From: Ramazzottius varieornatus
Lineage: Eukaryota > Animalia > Tardigrada
Direction of reading: 5' to 3'
Assembly (NCBI GenBank): GCA_001949185.1
Contig: BDGG01000003.1
Coordinates: 1,033,530 to 1,097,529, forward strand
Length of the DNA stretch: 64,000 bases
The notes under the pieces are model-generated. The model worked only from the letters and a program-made list of their open reading frames with translations. It did no database searches and was not told the DNA's origin. Shown piece after piece: positions 2,872 to 60,641 of this stretch (position 1 is its first letter; each line of letters begins with the position of its first letter). The position numbers and the translations under genes were made by a program.

Positions 2872-3195
2872 TCACCACCCGTGTCTTCCGTGATGTCCAT
2901 GATGGTGATGCCGTCTGCGGTGGCGCCTCCACCATCCTCCGTGGTAATGTCGATGATGATGGCGGTGTGGATAATCGTGGTAGTCGTCCCAGTAGCTCCG
3001 CTTTTCCCGGTTCAACGCCACATCAGTCGCGTTGGTGGATGAAGCAAGTATTGCGAAAAGCAGAACGCCGAAACCCAGCAGGTAAAACAAACGCAAAGAA
3101 CCCTACAAGAGTACCACACGGTTGGTGTCAGAGAAAAGTAAATGTAATGCACAAAATCTTAGAGTTAACAATATGGACAGATAAGCACTCACCAT
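2872..3195 (-). CDS. Secreted His/Arg/Trp-rich prepropeptide (2 exons: ATG 3193-3195, 2872-3102)
   Basis: ATG|GTGAGT donor and TGTAG acceptor join in frame to MGSLRLFYLLGFGVLLFAILASSTNA (signal peptide); REKR furin site; 41-aa His-rich mature peptide. Confidence 0.8.
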
Positions 3196-4089
3196 GATGG
3201 CACAGCTCGCACGTGGATGAATACCGCATCAACTGCACACCAAAAAACGCGAAAAAGACGTAAGAGCTACGTTAGTCTACATCTCAGATACTTATCTTCT
3301 GAGGTCCGAAAGGAAAAATCTCAGCCCATCCGTGTCTAAAGTATTTAGGTTTCTTGGCCAAAAGACATAAAACATTTTATTACCGTGACTTATGTACGAG
3401 GTACCGTCAATATTTGAACAAAACAATTTTGTCTTCATGAAGGTGAGCATGCCGGCGCCAATCTACCAGCCTGAGTTGTTGGACTTCTGACATCAACGTT
3501 CGGATATGCTGTAGGTTTCCGCGCTTTTGATGCGCGGTTTCATCAGTAAACCTGCATGTAGTTCGAGAGCTCTCATTAACAAGCCTGAAACTATGTTACC
3601 TTTCCACACGATAGAATTCAGAATAATGGAGCTACCACGCGCATCGTTGGGAAGTTCTTTACCACATCTACACTGGGCGTTACCCGTGTGACAACTGGTA
3701 CTGTGTATGTACTAGCAGTTACTGTAGTTCTGTGATGTGCTGATCAGCTGGGACACTTTACGGACCCGGTCCTTATGTAACGACTAGCCGGATAATGGAG
3801 GAAATATATCGTCGATGTGCCTACCGATCAGCTGATCGATATAACACCACACATAAAGCCCAGAACCGTCCGCCTCGGGCGGATTTTGCGCACAAACCGA
3901 GTTCTTAAGGCTTCCCAGCTGACCAACGCTTTACGGTATAGAACGGTACAACGAAATCCTCCACGGACACAACTTAAGGGGAAGTTATAGAGTATTCCGG
4001 CCCTTCTGGAGAACAATTGAATACGAGAGATGGGGCAACGTTTTCCGTGTAAAGACCGTTTCGCATGTTAGAATAATGGTCATGATACA

Positions 4090-53422: not shown

Positions 53423-55094
<1,672 letters not shown>

Positions 55095-55704
55095 AAAGTT
55101 CCTTGTTGCTGTCTTTATCTGAATCATCTCTAATTCATTGTTAGCATGTTTCCCAAGGACCAATTCACCGCAGCTTATGGTTCCTTTCTCATTGTTTTAA
55201 GCATGGTTTTTATGGAGGAATGTCAGTCCGGTAAACATTCCGAACTTCCGATAACGTCCAACCAACGACGAATAAGCGCTTTTTAGAACGCGACGTTTCG
55301 GCTTACTTGCCCTGTGTGTTAACAGTACTCACCTGCTCGTTTTCTGTTCGGCTTGCCGCAGCCAGCCATAAATTCCGTTGTCTCAACCGGCCAACCAGTG
55401 CTTGTGAGGACCATTTACAAAGTCGCTCTTATCTAAGTCCCGCCTTGCATCCAGCGTCAACTCCTCGAGCAAAATCCGGAAAATAATTACTTTTTAGTTG
55501 AGGATTTTCTTTCGCCGCATCGGTTCATCAGAGAAACTCCTTTCTCGTTCTAGGAGGCACGAGCTATGTTTTTTGTGGTAGTTGTTTCGTTTCGTCCTTT
55601 CTGGAAGAAGGATGACGTGCGAGGATGGCGGCTGAGCTCGGAGGAAAGATCGGCAATGGTGAGTTTTCCCAACCATTTAAACTTCCTTGAGTTCCTCTCG
55701 AAGA

Positions 55705-55791
55705 AGCTTTTATGATGACCTCTAGGCTAGAGTTTTTGAGTTATCTTGACACGTCAAGAGGCTGTGAAGTTAATCATCGAATCTGAAGCTT
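55705..55791 (+). ncRNA. Box C/D snoRNA, predicted LSU Um (yeast U2421 equivalent; snR78/SNORD52-like)
   Basis: C ATGATGA 55712, D' TTGA, C' GTGAAG, D CTGA 55783; AGCTT terminal stem; guide ggctagagtt pairs GACUCUAGUC with G:U wobbles. Confidence 0.7.
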
Positions 55792-55999
55792 TCGTTAACA
55801 ATCTTTGGTAAATTGGAAAGCTGAAGGAGCTTTTTCTGACGATAGTGGTTTCTTGCAGGTGTTGCGAAATCGGCTAGATATCCTGCCCGACCCTTTCGGC
55901 ATTGCGGAACCCTGGTCTGAGATGGCAGATCGCTCCAGCTGTTTTTGGAAGAATGGTACGTTCCTTCTTCTCTTGTGTAACGAGCGTTATGGGCGAGGG

Positions 56000-56063
56000 C
56001 TTCTTGATGACTTGACTAGAGTCTCCGAGGCAGACAGTGAAGATGTATAATTCCGTCTGATAT
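56000..56063 (+). ncRNA. Box C/D snoRNA, paralogue of the previous one (same LSU Um site)
   Basis: C TTGATGA 56004; guide gactagagtc 56014-56023; D' CCGA; C' GTGAAGA; D CTGA 56057. Confidence 0.75.
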
Positions 56064-56374
56064 TTTCTGGGTCCCTTTTTGAAGCGTGAATGTGGCTCAA
56101 CTCACTGATTCACGCAGTATGGTCTTTCTGTTCCAGATTGAGGAAAGCAATGGAGATCAACGAAAGGAACAGTTCGCTAGCGGAGGTTCGATAAAGATTT
56201 CGCTATCTTGCCGACGTGGAGAATCAAGTTGACACTCAATCAACGGTAATGTCTTTCGCCCATCTGTGTCAGGACCGTGCCGATGTGCAGGTTCGCCTAC
56301 TCAAGGGCGTGTCGAGCACGGCCCTGTTCTGTACAGTCACGATAACGTTGTTCAGGGTTTCCGTTATGTTGTTT

Positions 56375-56512
56375 CGGCCTTTCGCCACCGAAGGTTCGGA
56401 TCTTTTCGATCGCTTTGGCCAGTAGAGAGGCAAGAAAGAAGTGTAGCGTCTTTAGGAAGCAGTTCTGCAGCATTGCCTGCTGTAAACTGTGCCGAAAAAT
56501 GCCGCAACAAAT
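56375..56512 (+). ncRNA. Box H/ACA snoRNA, snR34/SNORA65-like (two LSU pseudouridines)
   Basis: Two hairpins; H box AAAGAA 56435; ACA 56507; pockets gccac/gccagt fit ACUGGC-UU-GUGGC and taggaa/gccga fit UCGGC-UC-UUCCUA. Confidence 0.85.
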
Positions 56513-56678
56513 GGAAATAATTTGTTTTTTCTATTTCTAGGTCTGGCTTGCTTGAGTTCTTAACGGTTCACCGTCGCCACTGCATTCCTTCGCAAATAGC
56601 TTCCGTCTCCTTGAAAACAACTTTGAAAGTCTGGTAAGAACTATTGAGTGAAGCTCCAGTGCTGCAATCTCTGAAGTA

Positions 56679-56762
56679 GAAAATGATGAGATTTTGTCTG
56701 ACACCTCTTATGAATAATCGTCATGATTATCTAACGCAATTTGGTAACTTGAACCTGAAATC
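56679..56762 (+). ncRNA. Box C/D snoRNA, predicted LSU Gm (yeast G2793 equivalent; snR48/SNORD60-like)
   Basis: C ATGATGA 56683; 13-nt guide tctgacacctctt antisense to AAGAGGUGUCAGA; D' ATGA 56710; D CTGA 56755. Confidence 0.8.
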
Positions 56763-56913
56763 TTCTGCACTGCAGAACGCTGCAGATATCATCCTGGTAT
56801 GATGAGCCATGCCGAACGATATTTCGATTTTTTAGGAACGTTTGAAAGGACTGACATTCTTCCTTTGGAGTAAATTGAACGGGTAAGCCTTGTAAGTTAG
56901 ATTAAGGAAACAC

Positions 56914-57062
56914 AACCTCTCTTCTTGGCGTGGCTTTTCCTTTTCTGGAGAAGTCATGTATGCTCAAACGGGAGGGAAACAAAGGGTCGAGTGAAGATTG
57001 CCTTCGGTGTTGTCATTTTATTGCCTTTGACAGTCCCATCCTCTAATCTTCAGATAACATTC
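56914..57062 (+). ncRNA. Box H/ACA snoRNA, two SSU pseudouridines (SNORA57/U99-like)
   Basis: Two hairpins; H box AAACAA 56977; ACA 57057; pockets ttcttggc/atgct fit AGCAU-UU-GCCAAGAA and gccttcg/cctcta fit UAGAGG-UU-CGAAGGC. Confidence 0.8.
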
Positions 57063-57173
57063 AATGTTTCTCTCATTCCAGACTCTAGCGTTGACTTTTG
57101 GAAATCGGAACGGAAATCGGAACGGATGATGAAGTCAGAAGGTAAGGTGCCTTTCTTGAAGTGGCGTTAGAAG

Positions 57174-57279
57174 GGGGAAATAGGATGAGTAAATCAGAAT
57201 GTTGATCCGGAGTTGACTGCAGTCTATCTTTGGAAAACGTGGGACAATTTCTACTTTCGTTCTTCTGACATAATTCCCC
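57174..57279 (+). ncRNA. Box C/D snoRNA, predicted SSU Am (yeast A974 equivalent; snR54/SNORD59-like)
   Basis: GGGGAA/TTCCCC stem; C AGGATGA 57182; 12-nt guide actttcgttctt antisense to AAGAACGAAAGU; D CTGA 57265. Confidence 0.8.
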
Positions 57280-57442
57280 ATTCCAAACCGCAGACCGATC
57301 TGCCTTTTTCATTCATCGATTATGCTTGCCTGATGGAAGTCTTGCATCTCAGGAATTTTTGAGGATCGAAGGAAGTCTGAAGTTTGTAGAATGGATATCA
57401 CGGTAAGAAAATTAGCTCTCTTGTTTTCCTTTTGAAATTGAA

Positions 57443-57514
57443 GAAAGTGATGATAAACTGACTTGACACCTCTTGAATGAACAGCCGTGATTTCAACCTT
57501 TTTTACCTGAAGTT
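57443..57514 (+). ncRNA. Box C/D snoRNA, predicted LSU Gm (yeast G2791 equivalent)
   Basis: C GTGATGA 57447; guide tgacacctcttg 57464-57475; D' ATGA 57477; C' GTGATTT; D CTGA 57507. Confidence 0.8.
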
Positions 57515-57682
57515 TTCAGTTAAAAAATAGCATTTAATATGCTTCGACCGTTTTAGTGATTGTTCCTTTTTTGTCCAGTGAAGAGACGCATTTCACCACT
57601 AGAGCGTTTGGGAGAAGTCACCGCGTTGTTCTTGGGTAAGTTCTGCTGCAAAGATTTTCATTTTATCGTTTTGGGGTGGAAT

Positions 57683-57758
57683 ACAAATGATGACAAACTC
57701 ATGCGCGTCAACTGAAAGCAGTGATGTTTCAAATGTACTCTAATTTTTTTCTGAAGTT
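57683..57758 (+). ncRNA. Box C/D snoRNA, predicted LSU Cm (yeast C2337 equivalent; snR64/SNORD74-like)
   Basis: C ATGATGA 57687; 12-nt guide tcatgcgcgtca antisense to UGACGCGCAUGA; D' CTGA 57712; C' GTGATGT; D CTGA 57751. Confidence 0.85.
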
Positions 57759-57916
57759 TTCCGTCCTCACATTTCGCTCGCAGGAATACCTTTGGTTTCT
57801 CGGTCGGTAATATTTAACGGTTTGTTTATCGCAGCTCGTGAAGGAGTTTCTTGAGCTCTAGATCGGTGGAGTGTTCCATGTCAAGGAGGTGAGTCAATGT
57901 TGACTTTGGGTTGGTT

Positions 57917-57975
57917 TTTGGTGATGGAGGTAGGGTTGAAACTTGCGGTGATGATTACATAGTTCATCTGACGAG
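57917..57975 (+). ncRNA. Probable box C/D snoRNA, predicted LSU Am (yeast A807 equivalent; snR39/59, SNORD32/51-like)
   Basis: C-like GTGATGG 57921; C' GTGATGA 57948; 9-nt guide catagttca antisense to UGAACUAUG; D CTGA 57968. Short guide and non-canonical C box. Confidence 0.55.
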
Positions 57976-58203
57976 CTCTGATTGGTTTATGTTGCAAATG
58001 TCTTTCGCTCCTATCTGAGAAACTTTCAACTCTTGGTTTGCTGCTTGAATACTTTTTTCGAGCGCAATTATTTTGAGAAAAAGTTAGTCAGGTTCTTGAT
58101 GTTTTTTTACAGGTGTCGAACTGGGAGGACCGGAAGTGGGGCTGTCAAATTCGAGGTGAGTCTGCTCGAAATTTCGGATTGGATGATTTTGGTTTTTGCG
58201 AAT

Positions 58204-58283
58204 GTGGATGATGATAACGATCCAACGCTGATTGTCGGTGATGTTATTTTGAATCAAACGAGCTTTTTAACCCTGACTTCCAC
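58204..58283 (+). ncRNA. Dual-guide box C/D snoRNA (SSU Am, yeast A619 equivalent, plus an LSU Gm near the A-loop)
   Basis: GTGGA/TCCAC stem; C ATGATGA 58208; D' guide aacgatccaacg vs CGUUGGAUUGUU; D guide acgagctttttaac vs GUUAAAAAGCUCGU; D CTGA 58273. Confidence 0.88.
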
Positions 58284-60641
58284 TTCCGGTTCAGACTATT
58301 GGACGACTTCGATTGCCGAAGGTTCTTCAAGTTCAGCTTTGGTTTTTGTTCTGTAGATTGGCTTCGATGTGGAACTGCTAGCCGGGATGGAAAGGATTCT
58401 CAACTGACGCTCTAGAATATTTTTGTTTTGAAGAGATGACTTTCGGTTGTCGAGAGATTCCTCAGTTCGGTGCTGAACCGTATTCTTGTTTTCGTCTTTT
58501 GGTTCGCACTATTTTACGAATGTGAGTTTTCGGTCGAGTGTGATACTGGAATTGAAGAACCCTCTGTGCATCGGTCGAAGAAAAATTTATGAGCGAGTGT
58601 TTCGGCTGAAGTTATGAGAATCAACGAGACTAACGAACTTGAGACTCATTTCAGTAGAATTGTAATCTTAATTTCGGTCTTCTTTTGGCTCTGAGTATCT
58701 AACGCAAGACCACGATGAGTTTACTGTGTTCGCGTAAAAGAAAAAAATGTCTATCGAGGGAATAGATTTTTGTGAACCGATTCGCCATCTTGCACCTTAC
58801 ACAATGCTCCGGGATTCAGGCACGTGTACAGAACCATCAAGACGCTGGAAGCAAGAAGATCGCGTTTGCCGGTGTCTGTGATGGAAAATACGCTATGGAT
58901 GAGGTACCAGTCGGCAAGGGCCGCAAGGCTATTGTGCTACTGCGATATCACAATATCCAAACTTGGGCTCCGTCTGTCCACAGTCTACAGTATCTTAGCT
59001 CGCGCAGTACTTCCGCCAAATCTCCCTAAACACCAGTAGGATCGACTTCCAAGTCCCCCCTCCCGCTGATTGATTTTCCATTGTCAATACGCCCCGTGCT
59101 TTTCCGCACAAGTTAAGAAGTAAGAACAATGTAAAATAATCATTGTCCTTTTCGACCCTTTGTCGGATCGGTTATGGTGCACTGTATGATTTGTAGCATC
59201 GTAGAAGATGGGTTATGGAATTCGAGGAAGATAAAGCGTGACAATGGTGGAGGTAACCATGATCTATTGATACAATTGCTGACCCGGGTGGTTAATGAAT
59301 GATGTTTGCTAGATGGGTCCAGTGTTCAATTGGGTGGAATATTCCACTACGGAGAGCGAGTTGACAGCTGACCTCCTGTGTAGACCGTCGAGAGCTCAAG
59401 GAAGCGTCAGCATTTTGCCGCCGACTACTGTCGGATTTCTTCCGACCTGGGTGCCGCGAGTAGTGCCGGGCAGCCTAAATTTCTCTGTTCCCGCTCGAAT
59501 CTCAGGCTTGAGGATAAGGAGATCAGTGCTGGTCCCGGAAGTTCCCCTGTACTCTCCGACACGGTCACCTAATGATCGAGATACACCTGAGATCGGGACT
59601 ACTTCGGCAAACGATTTAGGTAATTTAGGTAATTTGCCGCAGATAATGATGCAACGGGAAAGCAGTTTGATGCTCAACCGCGGGTGGAGTATCGATCAAT
59701 GCTCTGATATTTAGGTATTTCTCTGCTTGAGCAGTGGGTTTCTTGAACGGGTTATGAGCAGTGGCGCACTGCAACATAAAAAATGTCAGTCTGACACACC
59801 GTGGTTGTCATCTCAAGTAATTCACAGAATTACAGTTTCCAACGTCTCAGGGTTGAAACGCTGTCAGTATCGAACGCGATCTAGCTGCAGGGAGAAAAAC
59901 CGGAGCCTTCCGGGACCAACAGCAATTTCCTCCAAGTCGAAGAGACTACCCTGCAGCCACGTCGTTGGGCTCGCCGATGAGCGTGCGTGTGCGGGACCCA
60001 CGATCAAAACATACCAGGCAACCGCTTATGGCTGTTAGCTGACATAAGACGTTGGGTTTTATGCTGTCTTAGTACGAATAGTGACATTTAGTGGTTACAC
60101 CAATGAGCAACAGTCGTACCAGTGTGGGTGGACCCACACTGGTTGGACCCACACTGGTTGTACCAGTGCGTACCTGCTGTGTACTTCGCTGTAACTGCGA
60201 GATTATCGAGTAATTGCCAATTGCCACAGGACAGCTTTCTCACAATCTTCTTTTGACAGTGCAGAGGCGCTAAACAAGATAGCGAATGATGTGTTGAGAT
60301 GTATTTCCTTTCTATTCAACTCTTCATTTGTTTCTGGCCCGGCGACTGCGTCTTTCCACTTGTGTTTCCTTCACACACCGTCAATTAGTTTATGACAGGT
60401 CAGTGCCACAGTCGTGCCGAAAGAAGGAACGTATGTGACAAAATTTTTGTCCAACGTCAAACTCTTTGAAAATTCAACGTCGGAAAAGATAGCGGCCACT
60501 CAATCCTTGTCAGCGTAAGCACACAGACAGTACGTTCTAACGTGTACAGCTGTAATTTCTCTTTGCTGCTCGTATGGCGCAGTCCTTCGGAAAAACATTT
60601 ATACATCTAACCGGCACTCACAACTGCTCGAATAAAGTACG

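Follow-up and report, generated by a model that had tools for sequence, protein, structure and literature searches.

A probable non-coding host gene for ten intronic snoRNAs in the tardigrade Ramazzottius varieornatus

Introduction

The genes GAS5 and UHG host box C/D RNAs exclusively, and some other human SNHG genes host mixed sets. Uhg genes of Drosophila were reportedly described by Tycowski and Steitz in 2001. An earlier note on the genome of Ramazzottius varieornatus proposed an unannotated non-coding gene of the GAS5/UHG type, mixing C/D and H/ACA RNAs. Is there such a gene at this locus, or do its exons and guide-like elements have another explanation? We examined the locus in a window of 64,000 nucleotides (assembly GCA_001949185.1, contig BDGG01000003.1, positions 1,033,530–1,097,529). 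All positions given below are those of the window, and all features of the locus are on the + strand.

Results

Transcript and splicing

Ten consecutive GT-AG introns were found to be spliced out, and all ten joints on which the earlier note had asked for spliced RNA were seen in contigs of the runs X1, X2 and X5, which come from three separate studies (X5 from a diverged strain). Since the introns are absent from these contigs and the genome assembly contained no intron-less copy of the host gene, the contigs derive from RNA. The read evidence consisted of assembled contigs throughout, from which true ends, strand and abundance cannot be read.

The host transcript extended from about 55489 to 58637–58784 and contained 11 exons, about 1.2 kb when spliced. 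Exon 1 was present at 55489–55658 (5′ end approximate; contig piece 55489–55657 in X1) and exon 2 at 55859–55955 (joints in X1, X2 and X5). Contig joints placed exons 3 to 10 at 56137–56245, 56541–56633, 56836–56882, 57082–57141, 57353–57402, 57579–57635, 57835–57888 and 58113–58155, followed by the last exon, 11, at 58357–58784, its 3′ end falling somewhere in the range 58637–58784. The joints at exons 9 and 11 were read as 57634 to 57834 (X1, X2 and X5) and 58153 to 58355. According to the spliced contigs, introns 1–5 occupied 55659–55858, 55956–56136, 56246–56540, 56634–56835 and 56883–57081, and introns 6–10 occupied 57142–57352, 57403–57578, 57636–57834, 57889–58112 and 58156–58356. Seven of these had been predicted exactly, whereas the end of intron 6 was at 57352 instead of 57351, one base off. 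The donors of introns 8 and 10 were as predicted, but their acceptors were found at 57834 instead of 57783 (51 bases off) and at 58356 instead of 58336 (20 bases off). The gene limits first proposed, 55595–58400, were too narrow at both ends: the contigs of X1 and X5 both start at about 55489 (computed as about 55488 for X5), and the last exon reached 58637 in X2 and 58784 in X1. A promoter motif that had been pointed to at about 55595 falls within exon 1 as seen in the contigs. Next to the contig starts is a C followed by five T nucleotides, which is compatible with a TOP sequence, but contig ends do not map start sites; a promoter of the TCT/5′TOP type is a guess for this gene.

Coding potential

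The host was found to be non-coding, as proposed, in that the longest ATG ORF of the spliced transcript contained 64 codons. This ORF starts at 55566, the first ATG of the transcript, and ends in exon 3, with eight exon junctions beyond its stop. One exon had been claimed to contain stops in each of the three frames; four did (exons 1, 3, 9 and 11), with 6–10 stops per frame in exon 11. ORF segments from exons 1 and 2 and the longest stop-free run of exon 11 were searched against Pfam, with no match. The exons of strain X5 differed by base changes and by indels of 1, 3 and 6 bases. Within the 64-codon ORF there were two residue-altering changes (55573 and 55892), one silent change and one 6-base insertion, and thus no sign of constraint.

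The ten snoRNAs

The predicted eight box C/D and two H/ACA RNAs, one per intron, were borne out by boxes, Rfam matches, guides and a paralogue. An Rfam scan of 4 kb gave 13 snoRNA-family matches, every one of them on the + strand, and a snoRNA family was found in eight of the ten introns, always on the + strand. Guides of 10–16 bp against the rRNA of this genome lay immediately 5′ of a D or D′ box in all eight C/D RNAs, and six exact antisense matches of 12–15 nt stood directly before such a box. Each C/D RNA had at least one guide that placed its target at the fifth position from D/D′, as had been claimed. Guide significance was judged by the best score against 200 shuffles.

snoRNA 1 (box C/D, intron 1, 55704–55792) was identified by its boxes and guide. 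It contained a C box at 55712–55718, a degenerate D′ box at about 55736 and a D box at 55783–55786, and its ends pair in a 6-bp terminal stem. Alternatively, the RNA may extend as far as the CTGA of 55821, in which case its stem would measure 10 bp. Its D′ guide paired by 13–14 bp with 18S 1336–1349 (predicted target C1340 or U1341; reached by 3/200 shuffles). snoRNA 2 (SNORD52-like box C/D, intron 2, 56000–56064), supported by Rfam and its guide, was without a clear terminal stem and contained the boxes C 56004–56010, D′ 56025–56028 (CCGA) and D 56057–56060; in strain X5 the change C>T at 56026 gives a perfect CTGA. The D′ guide matched 28S 2797–2806 by 10 exact bp (predicted target U2800). 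SNORD52 scored 21.6 bits (E 0.027), with the guide core of the family consensus. snoRNA 4 (SNORD60-like box C/D, intron 4, 56678–56763), likewise supported by Rfam and its guide, contained the boxes C 56683–56689, D′ (ATGA) 56710–56713 and D 56755–56758. Its D′ guide, with 13 exact bp extendable to 17, was directed to 28S 3190–3206 (predicted target G3194; 0/200 shuffles), and SNORD60 scored 25.2 bits (E 0.1). snoRNA 7 (box C/D of the snoR1/SNORD60 clan, intron 7, 57440–57517), also recognized by Rfam and guide, is a paralogue of snoRNA 4, with boxes C 57447–57453, D′ (ATGA) 57477–57480 and D 57507–57510. The D′ guide paired by 13 bp with 28S 3189–3201 (predicted target G3192; reached by 2/200 shuffles), and snoR1 scored 18.5 bits with the guide core common to the consensus.

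Intron 6 contained snoRNA 6 (box C/D, 57173–57280), which was recognized by its boxes and a 12-bp guide. A variant C box (AGGATGA) was present at 57182–57188 and a D box at 57265–57268, and a G/C-rich terminal stem, 57174–57179 with 57274–57279, can be read from the sequence. The D guide, which runs up to the D box, matched 18S 978–989 by 12 exact bp (predicted target A982), and a possible D′ guide matched 28S 1902–1915. No Rfam family was matched by snoRNAs 1 and 6. snoRNA 8 (SNORD10-like box C/D, intron 8, 57681–57761), supported by Rfam and two guides, contained the boxes C 57687–57693, D′ 57712–57715, C′ 57722–57727 and D 57751–57754. Its D′ guide was directed to 28S 2680–2691 (predicted target C2683) and its D guide to 18S 758–773 (predicted target A762), both with 0/200 shuffles; SNORD10 scored 23.2 bits (E 0.044). 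In snoRNA 9 (snR60/Z15 box C/D, intron 9, 57939–58026; Rfam and two guides), the boxes were C 57948–57954, D′ 57968–57971 and D 58015–58018, with a D′ guide to 28S 1050–1058 (predicted target A1053) and a D guide to 28S 1140–1154 (predicted target G1144). Its match to RF00309 (snR60/Z15), 51.4 bits against a gathering score of 41, was the only one above its cut-off. snoRNA 10 (SNORD36-like box C/D, intron 10, 58205–58283; Rfam and guide) contained the boxes C 58208–58214, D′ 58228–58231, C′ 58239–58244 and D 58273–58276. The D guide paired by 15 exact bp with 18S 617–631 (predicted target A621; 0/200 shuffles) and equals the consensus of SNORD36, which scored 26.9 bits against a gathering score of 30. 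Five guide elements, the D guides of snoRNAs 1, 2, 4 and 7 and the D′ guide of snoRNA 10, had no significant rRNA match (46–152 of 200 shuffles).

The H/ACA RNA of intron 3, snoRNA 3 (SNORA65-like, 56376–56512), was supported by Rfam and its paralogue and contained the H box at 56435–56440 and ACA at 56507–56509. SNORA65 scored 27.5 bits (E 0.045) with the pocket strands of the consensus, and the target of the 3′ pocket was found in the organism's own 28S at 3276–3288 (predicted pseudouridine U3281). The second, snoRNA 5 (SNORA57-like, intron 5, 56916–57062; Rfam), contained the H box at 56977–56982 and ACA at 57057–57059. SNORA57 scored 35.5 bits (E 7e-6) and ceN88 32.8 bits; the 3′ pocket target was found in the own 18S at 990–1004 (predicted pseudouridine U996 or U997). 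Folding predicted the upper stem of the 5′ hairpin of snoRNA 5, and the minimum-energy folds of snoRNAs 3 and 5 hardly surpassed those of shuffles (z −0.7 to −1.95) and did not on their own reproduce the canonical shape.

The scores of SNORA65, SNORD36, SNORD60, SNORD10, SNORD52 and snoR1 were weaker, yet the guide cores were those of the family consensus. A scan of the full 64 kb on both strands for a C box and D box with stem and rRNA guide found loci in this region only, on the + strand. The pattern of one guide per intron was far beyond chance. In all eight C/D RNAs, 68–94 nt (mean 79) separated the D box from the downstream 3′ splice site; according to Hirose and Steitz in 2001, such a distance is said to favour splicing-coupled assembly of C/D snoRNPs in vertebrates.

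Conservation and site homology

Conservation between strain X5 and the reference was restricted to the snoRNA bodies. Over introns 3, 7, 8 and 9, which X5 contigs span, the intron flanks (526 nt) showed 15 differences, whereas the snoRNA bodies (333 nt) were unchanged, a split with a probability of about 6e-4 under an even spread. A paralogue of snoRNA 3 on another contig was 93% identical over the snoRNA stretch alone. The match starts at the base of the 5′ hairpin and ends three bases beyond ACA, which sets the boundaries of snoRNA 3. The pocket strands of the paralogue were invariant and its single H-box change was at an N position.

The human sites are A668 (SNORD36), A1031 (SNORD59), A1534 and G1625 (SNORD77-80), C3808 (SNORD10), U3925 (SNORD52) and G4370 (SNORD60) (PMC11550049), and the predicted target bases were identical to these counterparts. 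The spacing in 28S was the same as in human (1144−1053 = 91 = 1625−1534; 2800−2683 = 117 = 3925−3808), and that in 18S was nearly so (982−621 = 361 versus 363).

Discussion

With a probability of about 90%, the locus is a separate RNA polymerase II gene, from 55489 to about 58784, whose introns are the useful products. The proposed unannotated, non-coding GAS5/UHG-type host with mixed guides was thus supported by spliced contigs, lack of an ORF above 64 codons, Rfam matches and guides. After splicing of the primary transcript, each of the ten excised GT-AG introns would be trimmed to one snoRNA, shielded by its proteins, and mature small RNAs would accumulate. The eight C/D RNAs would direct 2′-O-methylation of the rRNA nucleotide opposite guide position 5, counted upstream from D/D′, that is, of A621, A762, A982 and C1340/U1341 in 18S and of A1053, G1144, C2683, U2800, G3192 and G3194 in 28S. 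The two H/ACA RNAs would direct pseudouridylation of 28S U3281 and 18S U996/997. What remains of the transcript, a 1.2-kb RNA of spliced exons lacking a meaningful ORF, is most likely a by-product. Because translation would stop early, with eight exon junctions still to come, this RNA would be exposed to nonsense-mediated decay.

The exons might instead belong to the upstream gene for GDP-mannose 4,6-dehydratase, as a long, spliced extension at its 3′ end (read-through or an alternative 3′ UTR), so that a protein-coding gene would host the snoRNAs. The dehydratase gene is on the same strand, with its stop codon at 55092–55094, and its contigs end at 55352–55411. Because the gap to the start of the host contig is just about 80–140 nt, the two genes can only be presumed to be transcribed independently. 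However, the two contigs were separate in all three RNA-derived runs, the host contig started at the same base, 55489, in two runs, and in X2 the depth was zero in the bin 55435–55601 while both genes were well covered. The sole bridging contig (X15, type unknown) was unspliced and of low depth, and is therefore probably DNA. We consider such an extension very unlikely. A slightly larger, still small, chance belongs to a function of the spliced RNA itself, through the 64-residue peptide or as a regulatory lncRNA, as proposed for GAS5 and fly Uhg4. The peptide ORF begins at the first ATG, the k-mer depth of the spliced contig is close to that of the neighbouring dehydratase mRNA (k-mer depth cannot rank genes), and in Uhg4 there is a precedent, its deletion phenotypes not being accounted for by its snoRNAs (PMC9710044). 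Against such a function stand the exon pieces without a Pfam match, the changes of X5 within the ORF, which show no sign of constraint, and the junctions after the stop.

That the boxes and complementarities are chance features of ordinary introns is hardly credible, even though most Rfam scores were below gathering thresholds and some guides were without a target. One family was above threshold, an element was present in ten of ten introns, and matches were confined to one strand with no candidates elsewhere in the 64 kb. The human-identical spacing, the strain differences that spare the snoRNA bodies and the paralogue conserved over snoRNA 3 alone are further points against chance.

Read as a separate host gene, the locus is of a kind already known, of which it is a new member. 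It resembles vertebrate UHG/SNHG1, GAS5 and other SNHG genes in several ways: the polymerase II transcript is spliced and has no meaningful ORF, the exons are short and weakly constrained, each intron contains one snoRNA, many junctions come after an early stop, and the C/D RNAs lie about 70–90 nt before the 3′ splice site. It differs from vertebrate SNHG genes in sitting in an animal of a different phylum, and from GAS5 and UHG in mixing C/D and H/ACA guides. The Uhg genes of Drosophila contain several snoRNAs in their introns, some of them H/ACA guides in successive introns (PMC9710044), and are likewise ecdysozoan non-coding hosts, whereas the snoRNA set and the neighbouring gene are different and all ten introns are occupied in the tardigrade. 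In comparison with the Rfam families snR60/Z15, SNORD36, SNORD52, SNORD60/snoR1 (CL00066), SNORD10, SNORA57/ceN88 and SNORA65, the boxes and guide cores were alike, and thus the homologous rRNA targets; all but snR60/Z15 were sub-threshold and diverged outside the guides. In snoRNA 8, unlike SNORD10, a SNORD10-type D′ guide was joined to a second guide for 18S A762.

The snoRNA Host Gene and Its Spliced Introns

In our study, the plus-strand region from about 55489 to 58637-58784 was found to be a non-coding multi-snoRNA host gene. Ten spliced joints were observed, each of the ten introns held one snoRNA in sense orientation on the plus strand, and no long open reading frame (ORF) was present, in agreement with the earlier note, which had proposed a non-coding host of the GAS5/UHG type with both box C/D and H/ACA RNAs. 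The architecture is the one known from the vertebrate UHG, GAS5, and SNHG genes and from the Uhg genes of Drosophila, some of which also carry H/ACA guides in consecutive introns (PMC9710044). With the present gene, the non-coding host design with one snoRNA per intron reaches another ecdysozoan phylum, beyond vertebrates and flies. Protein-centred gene finding sees nothing at this locus, and no paper on tardigrade modification-guide snoRNAs was found in the open-access literature. The annotation gains ten predicted rRNA-modification guides and their host gene, and about twelve modified rRNA positions are predicted in a form that can be tested. The gene itself is new; the kind of gene is already known, and the understanding of how snoRNA host genes work is unchanged.

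The contigs of four public runs assigned to this species were aligned to positions 54600-59600. Contigs of the runs X1, X2, and X5, which come from three studies (X5 from a diverged strain), skipped ten stretches on the plus strand, each starting with GT and ending with AG. A search of the whole assembly found no intron-less copy of the locus, and the joined contigs must therefore derive from RNA. The spliced contigs placed introns 1 to 5 at 55659-55858, 55956-56136, 56246-56540, 56634-56835, and 56883-57081, and introns 6 to 10 at 57142-57352, 57403-57578, 57636-57834, 57889-58112, and 58156-58356, all on the plus strand. Ten introns had been proposed earlier by inspection of the sequence; they begin with GT and close with AG behind a pyrimidine-rich stretch. 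Seven of them agreed exactly with the contig joints and one was displaced by a single base. The remaining two had wrong acceptors, at 57783 and 58336, where no contig joint was found; the observed acceptors lie further downstream, at 57834 and 58356. The gene start proposed at 55595 and the TCT/5′TOP motif suggested for it fall inside exon 1, and no contig ends at 55595.

Unspliced contigs, containing single introns and about 30 flanking bases, were also present at a depth lower than that of the spliced contigs, as expected for precursor RNA. An unspliced contig across intron 8 (57606-57863) was the same in X1, X2, and X5, with a depth of 59 in X2 against 141 for the spliced form; this hints at frequent retention of intron 8, contig depth being a poor measure.

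At the 5′ end, an X1 contig starts at 55489, and the end of an X5 contig computes to about the same base. The next base is a C with five T nucleotides after it, which would fit the definition of a 5′TOP start quoted in the literature (PMC6954239), although contig ends cannot map cap sites. The last exon was unbroken to 58637 in X2 or 58784 in X1.

A GDP-mannose 4,6-dehydratase gene (53731-55411, plus strand) was found directly upstream. Pfam assigned the last piece of its ORF to PF16363 (E 2.5e-12); the gene contains a 58-nt intron (54806-54863) and a stop codon at 55092-55094, and its contigs end at 55352-55411, only about 80-140 nt from the start of the host gene. Read-through from the dehydratase gene into the host exons has a low probability: the two genes lay on separate contigs in all three RNA-derived runs, and the X2 depth was zero in the bin between them. 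On these two grounds we infer two transcription units, about 80-140 nt apart.

Coding Potential and Fate of the Host RNA

The spliced RNA is 1208 nt long if its 3′ end is at 58784. Reading frames were followed across the eleven exons by coordinates. The longest ATG-initiated ORF comprised 64 codons, opening at 55566 and terminating in exon 3 (stop codon 56139-56141), and the next longest comprised 34 codons. Stops in all three frames were found in exons 1, 3, 9, and 11. No Pfam match was obtained for the portions of ORF in exons 1 and 2 or for the longest stop-free segment in exon 11. The X5 exons differed from the reference by base changes and by indels of 1, 3, and 6 bases, and two of the three base changes in the 64-codon ORF altered the residue. 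None of this evidence suggests that the host RNA is protein-coding, and the earlier description of an ORF-poor region with a non-coding host gene is upheld.

The first ORF ends in exon 3, with eight exon junctions downstream. In GAS5 and UHG RNAs, an early stop followed by downstream junctions leads to exposure to nonsense-mediated decay (PMC6954239), and the host RNA, to judge from its layout, may be exposed in the same way. The host gene is transcribed and its ten introns are spliced out; the introns would then be debranched and trimmed to protein-bound snoRNAs, which would guide methylation and pseudouridylation of the rRNA, and the exon RNA would most likely be a by-product. It is improbable, in our estimate, that the exon RNA is stable and abundant with a role of its own (encoding a peptide of 64 residues or acting as a regulatory RNA), that a TOP-type start lies within about 100 nt of the 3′ end of the preceding gene, and that much of the rRNA-modification machinery is gathered in a few such genes under common growth control.

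Families and Anatomy of the snoRNAs

Over the whole window, a single family passed the curated thresholds of Rfam: snR60/Z15 (RF00309) in intron 9, with 51.4 bits against a gathering threshold of 41. When 4 kb were scanned by E-value, 13 snoRNA-family matches were found, spread over eight introns; the plus strand has all of them and the minus strand none. Below their gathering thresholds were SNORA57 in intron 5 (35.5 bits; threshold 40), SNORA65 in intron 3 (27.5; 70), SNORD36 in intron 10 (26.9; 30), SNORD60 in intron 4 (25.2; 42), SNORD10 in intron 8 (23.2; 37), SNORD52 in intron 2 (21.6; 45), and snoR1 in intron 7 (18.5; 49); intron 5 also matched the nematode family ceN88 with 32.8 bits. 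The letters conserved in the Rfam alignments were the boxes and the guide cores. The scores are lower than the cut-off for formal membership; these snoRNAs probably function like SNORD36, SNORD52, SNORD60/snoR1, SNORD10, SNORA57, and SNORA65, because their guide cores match. No Rfam family was matched by introns 1 and 6 in the 4-kb scan.

The snoRNAs are numbered here by intron; 3 and 5 are H/ACA RNAs and the other eight are box C/D RNAs. Six of these eight contained a canonical C box (RUGAUGA) and a terminal stem of 4-8 bp. In snoRNA 1 the C box lies at 55712 and the D box at 55783, with a terminal stem of 6 bp. In snoRNA 6 the C box (57182) contains one mismatch; the D box follows at 57265, and the terminal stem is G/C-rich and 6 bp long. 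The C box of snoRNA 2 is UUGAUGA, without a clear terminal stem. The window was scanned on both strands for loci that combine a C box, a D box, and a terminal stem with an rRNA guide of 11 bp or more; six loci were found, all in this region and on the plus strand, and none elsewhere in the window. SnoRNAs 4 (56678-56763) and 7 (57440-57517) are paralogues of the SNORD60/snoR1 clan.

Two further CTGA motifs were present 3′ of snoRNA 1 (55787-55840), at 55821 and 55836. The stretch after the motif at 55821 is able to pair over 10 bp, as a stem, with the sequence 5′ of the C box, and a longer, 133-nt form of snoRNA 1 ending near this motif is possible. The 9 nt in front of the motif at 55836 are complementary to 18S 621-629, the region targeted by SNORD36.

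Guides Against the rRNA of the Same Genome

One rDNA unit of the same assembly was used as target, in which 18S (1820 nt), 5.8S, and 28S (3814 nt) were located with Rfam; positions follow this rRNA. Exact antisense matches of 12-15 nt to the rRNA occurred six times in the 2.8 kb of the host gene, each immediately 5′ of a D or D′ box. In the other 61 kb, ten such matches were found on the plus strand and fourteen on the minus strand, none of them before such boxes. The exact-match search missed several guides that have degenerate D′ boxes, and a loose duplex scan was too noisy; both were superseded by a test anchored on the boxes, in which each guide was compared with 200 shuffles of itself.

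All eight C/D snoRNAs were found to carry at least one guide of at least 10 nt to the organism's own 18S or 28S, ending 1-3 nt from the D or D′ box with the target at the fifth position, and the complementarity to rRNA claimed earlier was thus confirmed. No shuffle out of 200 did as well as the guides predicted to target 28S G3194 (snoRNA 4, D′), 28S C2683 and 18S A762 (snoRNA 8, D′ and D), 28S G1144 (snoRNA 9, D), and 18S A621 (snoRNA 10, D). The figure was 2/200 for the D′ guide of snoRNA 7 (predicted target 28S G3192), 3/200 for that of snoRNA 1 (18S C1340 or U1341, the box register being uncertain), 11/200 for the D guide of snoRNA 6 (18S A982), and 16/200 for the D′ guide of snoRNA 2 (28S U2800). 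The D′ guides of the paralogous snoRNAs 4 and 7 address the same 28S stretch two bases out of register, which gives the two predicted sites G3194 and G3192. For the D′ guide of snoRNA 9, the best duplex (18S 1562-1578) was rejected as it uses C-box bases, and the family target 28S A1053 (9 bp, no shuffle figure) was kept. The D guides of snoRNAs 1, 2, 4, and 7 and the D′ guide of snoRNA 10 had no significant partner in the own rRNA.

SnoRNA 10 is SNORD36-like. Between its D′ guide (58216-58227) and 28S 3314-3325 there is a single mismatch, A-C at guide position 3, and the pairing was not significant. In other eukaryotes the mismatched rRNA position is a U, which would pair with the guide. If this U is right, guide and target may have drifted apart.

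The predicted sites were compared with human sites, which are numbered separately. Known human sites are Am668 (SNORD36) and Am1031 (SNORD59) in 18S, and Am1534 and Gm1625 (SNORD77/80, relatives of snR60), Cm3808 (SNORD10), Um3925 (SNORD52), and Gm4370 (SNORD60) in 28S (PMC11550049). The predicted target base was the same as the human base in every listed case. The spacing agreed as well: 1144-1053 and human 1625-1534 are both 91, 2800-2683 and human 3925-3808 are both 117, and 982-621 is 361 against 363 in human. This agreement in base and spacing is independent of the Rfam matches, and it supports the earlier proposal that the base predicted to be modified falls at the fifth guide position.

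Position in the Introns and Constraint Between Strains

The distance from the end of the D box to the 3′ splice site was 72, 76, 77, 84, 68, 80, 94, and 80 nt in the eight C/D RNAs. The two acceptors proposed earlier would give 29 and 60 nt, whereas the corrected acceptors restored the regular spacing. In vertebrates, a D-box distance in this range is reported to favour splicing-coupled assembly of C/D snoRNPs, and the distance of about 80 nt between C/D snoRNA and 3′ splice site likewise extends to this phylum. For the two H/ACA RNAs, 28 and 19 nt separate the 3′ end from the splice site.

The X5 lineage differs from the reference by 1-5%. In X5 contigs spanning introns 3, 7, 8, and 9, 15 differences were found in 526 nt of intron flank, and the 333 nt of snoRNA body had no difference; an even spread of the differences would give this result with a probability of about 6e-4. 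The only listed X5 difference inside a snoRNA, C to T at 56026, changes the D′ box of the SNORD52-like RNA from CCGA to a perfect CTGA.

The H/ACA RNAs

Both H/ACA RNAs (predicted extents 56376-56512 and 56916-57062) showed the order hairpin, H box (ANANNA), hairpin, and ACA, the triplet lying three nt ahead of the 3′ end, with an Rfam structural alignment over the full model. The H boxes are at 56435-56440 (SNORA65-like, intron 3) and 56977-56982 (SNORA57-like, intron 5), and the ACA triplets at 56507-56509 and 57057-57059, respectively. Free-energy folding gave z values of -0.7 to -1.95, which are uninformative by themselves; the upper stem of the SNORA57-like 5′ hairpin was strongly predicted by folding.

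H/ACA guides typically have a bipartite pocket around an unpaired U of the rRNA, about 14-16 nt away from the H or ACA box. The 3′ pocket of the SNORA65-like RNA fits 28S 3276-3288 around the candidate U3281, about 16 nt from the box. The 3′ pocket of the SNORA57-like RNA fits 18S 990-1004 (candidate U996/997), with 14-19 nt to the box depending on the triplet taken as the box. The 5′ pockets of both RNAs had no convincing target in the own rRNA; for the SNORA57-like RNA, a site near 18S 970 was rejected on its geometry.

A paralogue of the SNORA65-like RNA was found on another contig of the assembly (G000:C5:27633-27773; L005:1034-1174, minus strand), 93% identical and with 27.0 bits for Rfam SNORA65. 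The two copies are similar from the base of the 5′ hairpin (about 56376) to three bases past the ACA (56512), and the flanks are unrelated. The pocket strands of the two copies are identical, and the sole change in the H box is at an N position.

Folding predicted a 75-nt imperfect hairpin (56262-56345; -32.3 kcal/mol, z -2.1) in the 5′ portion of intron 3, ahead of the H/ACA RNA. The hairpin matched no Rfam family and lies outside the duplicated SNORA65-like unit; it may represent another small RNA, such as a microRNA-like hairpin, or have no significance. X5 was without any difference over 56254-56505, which covers this hairpin.
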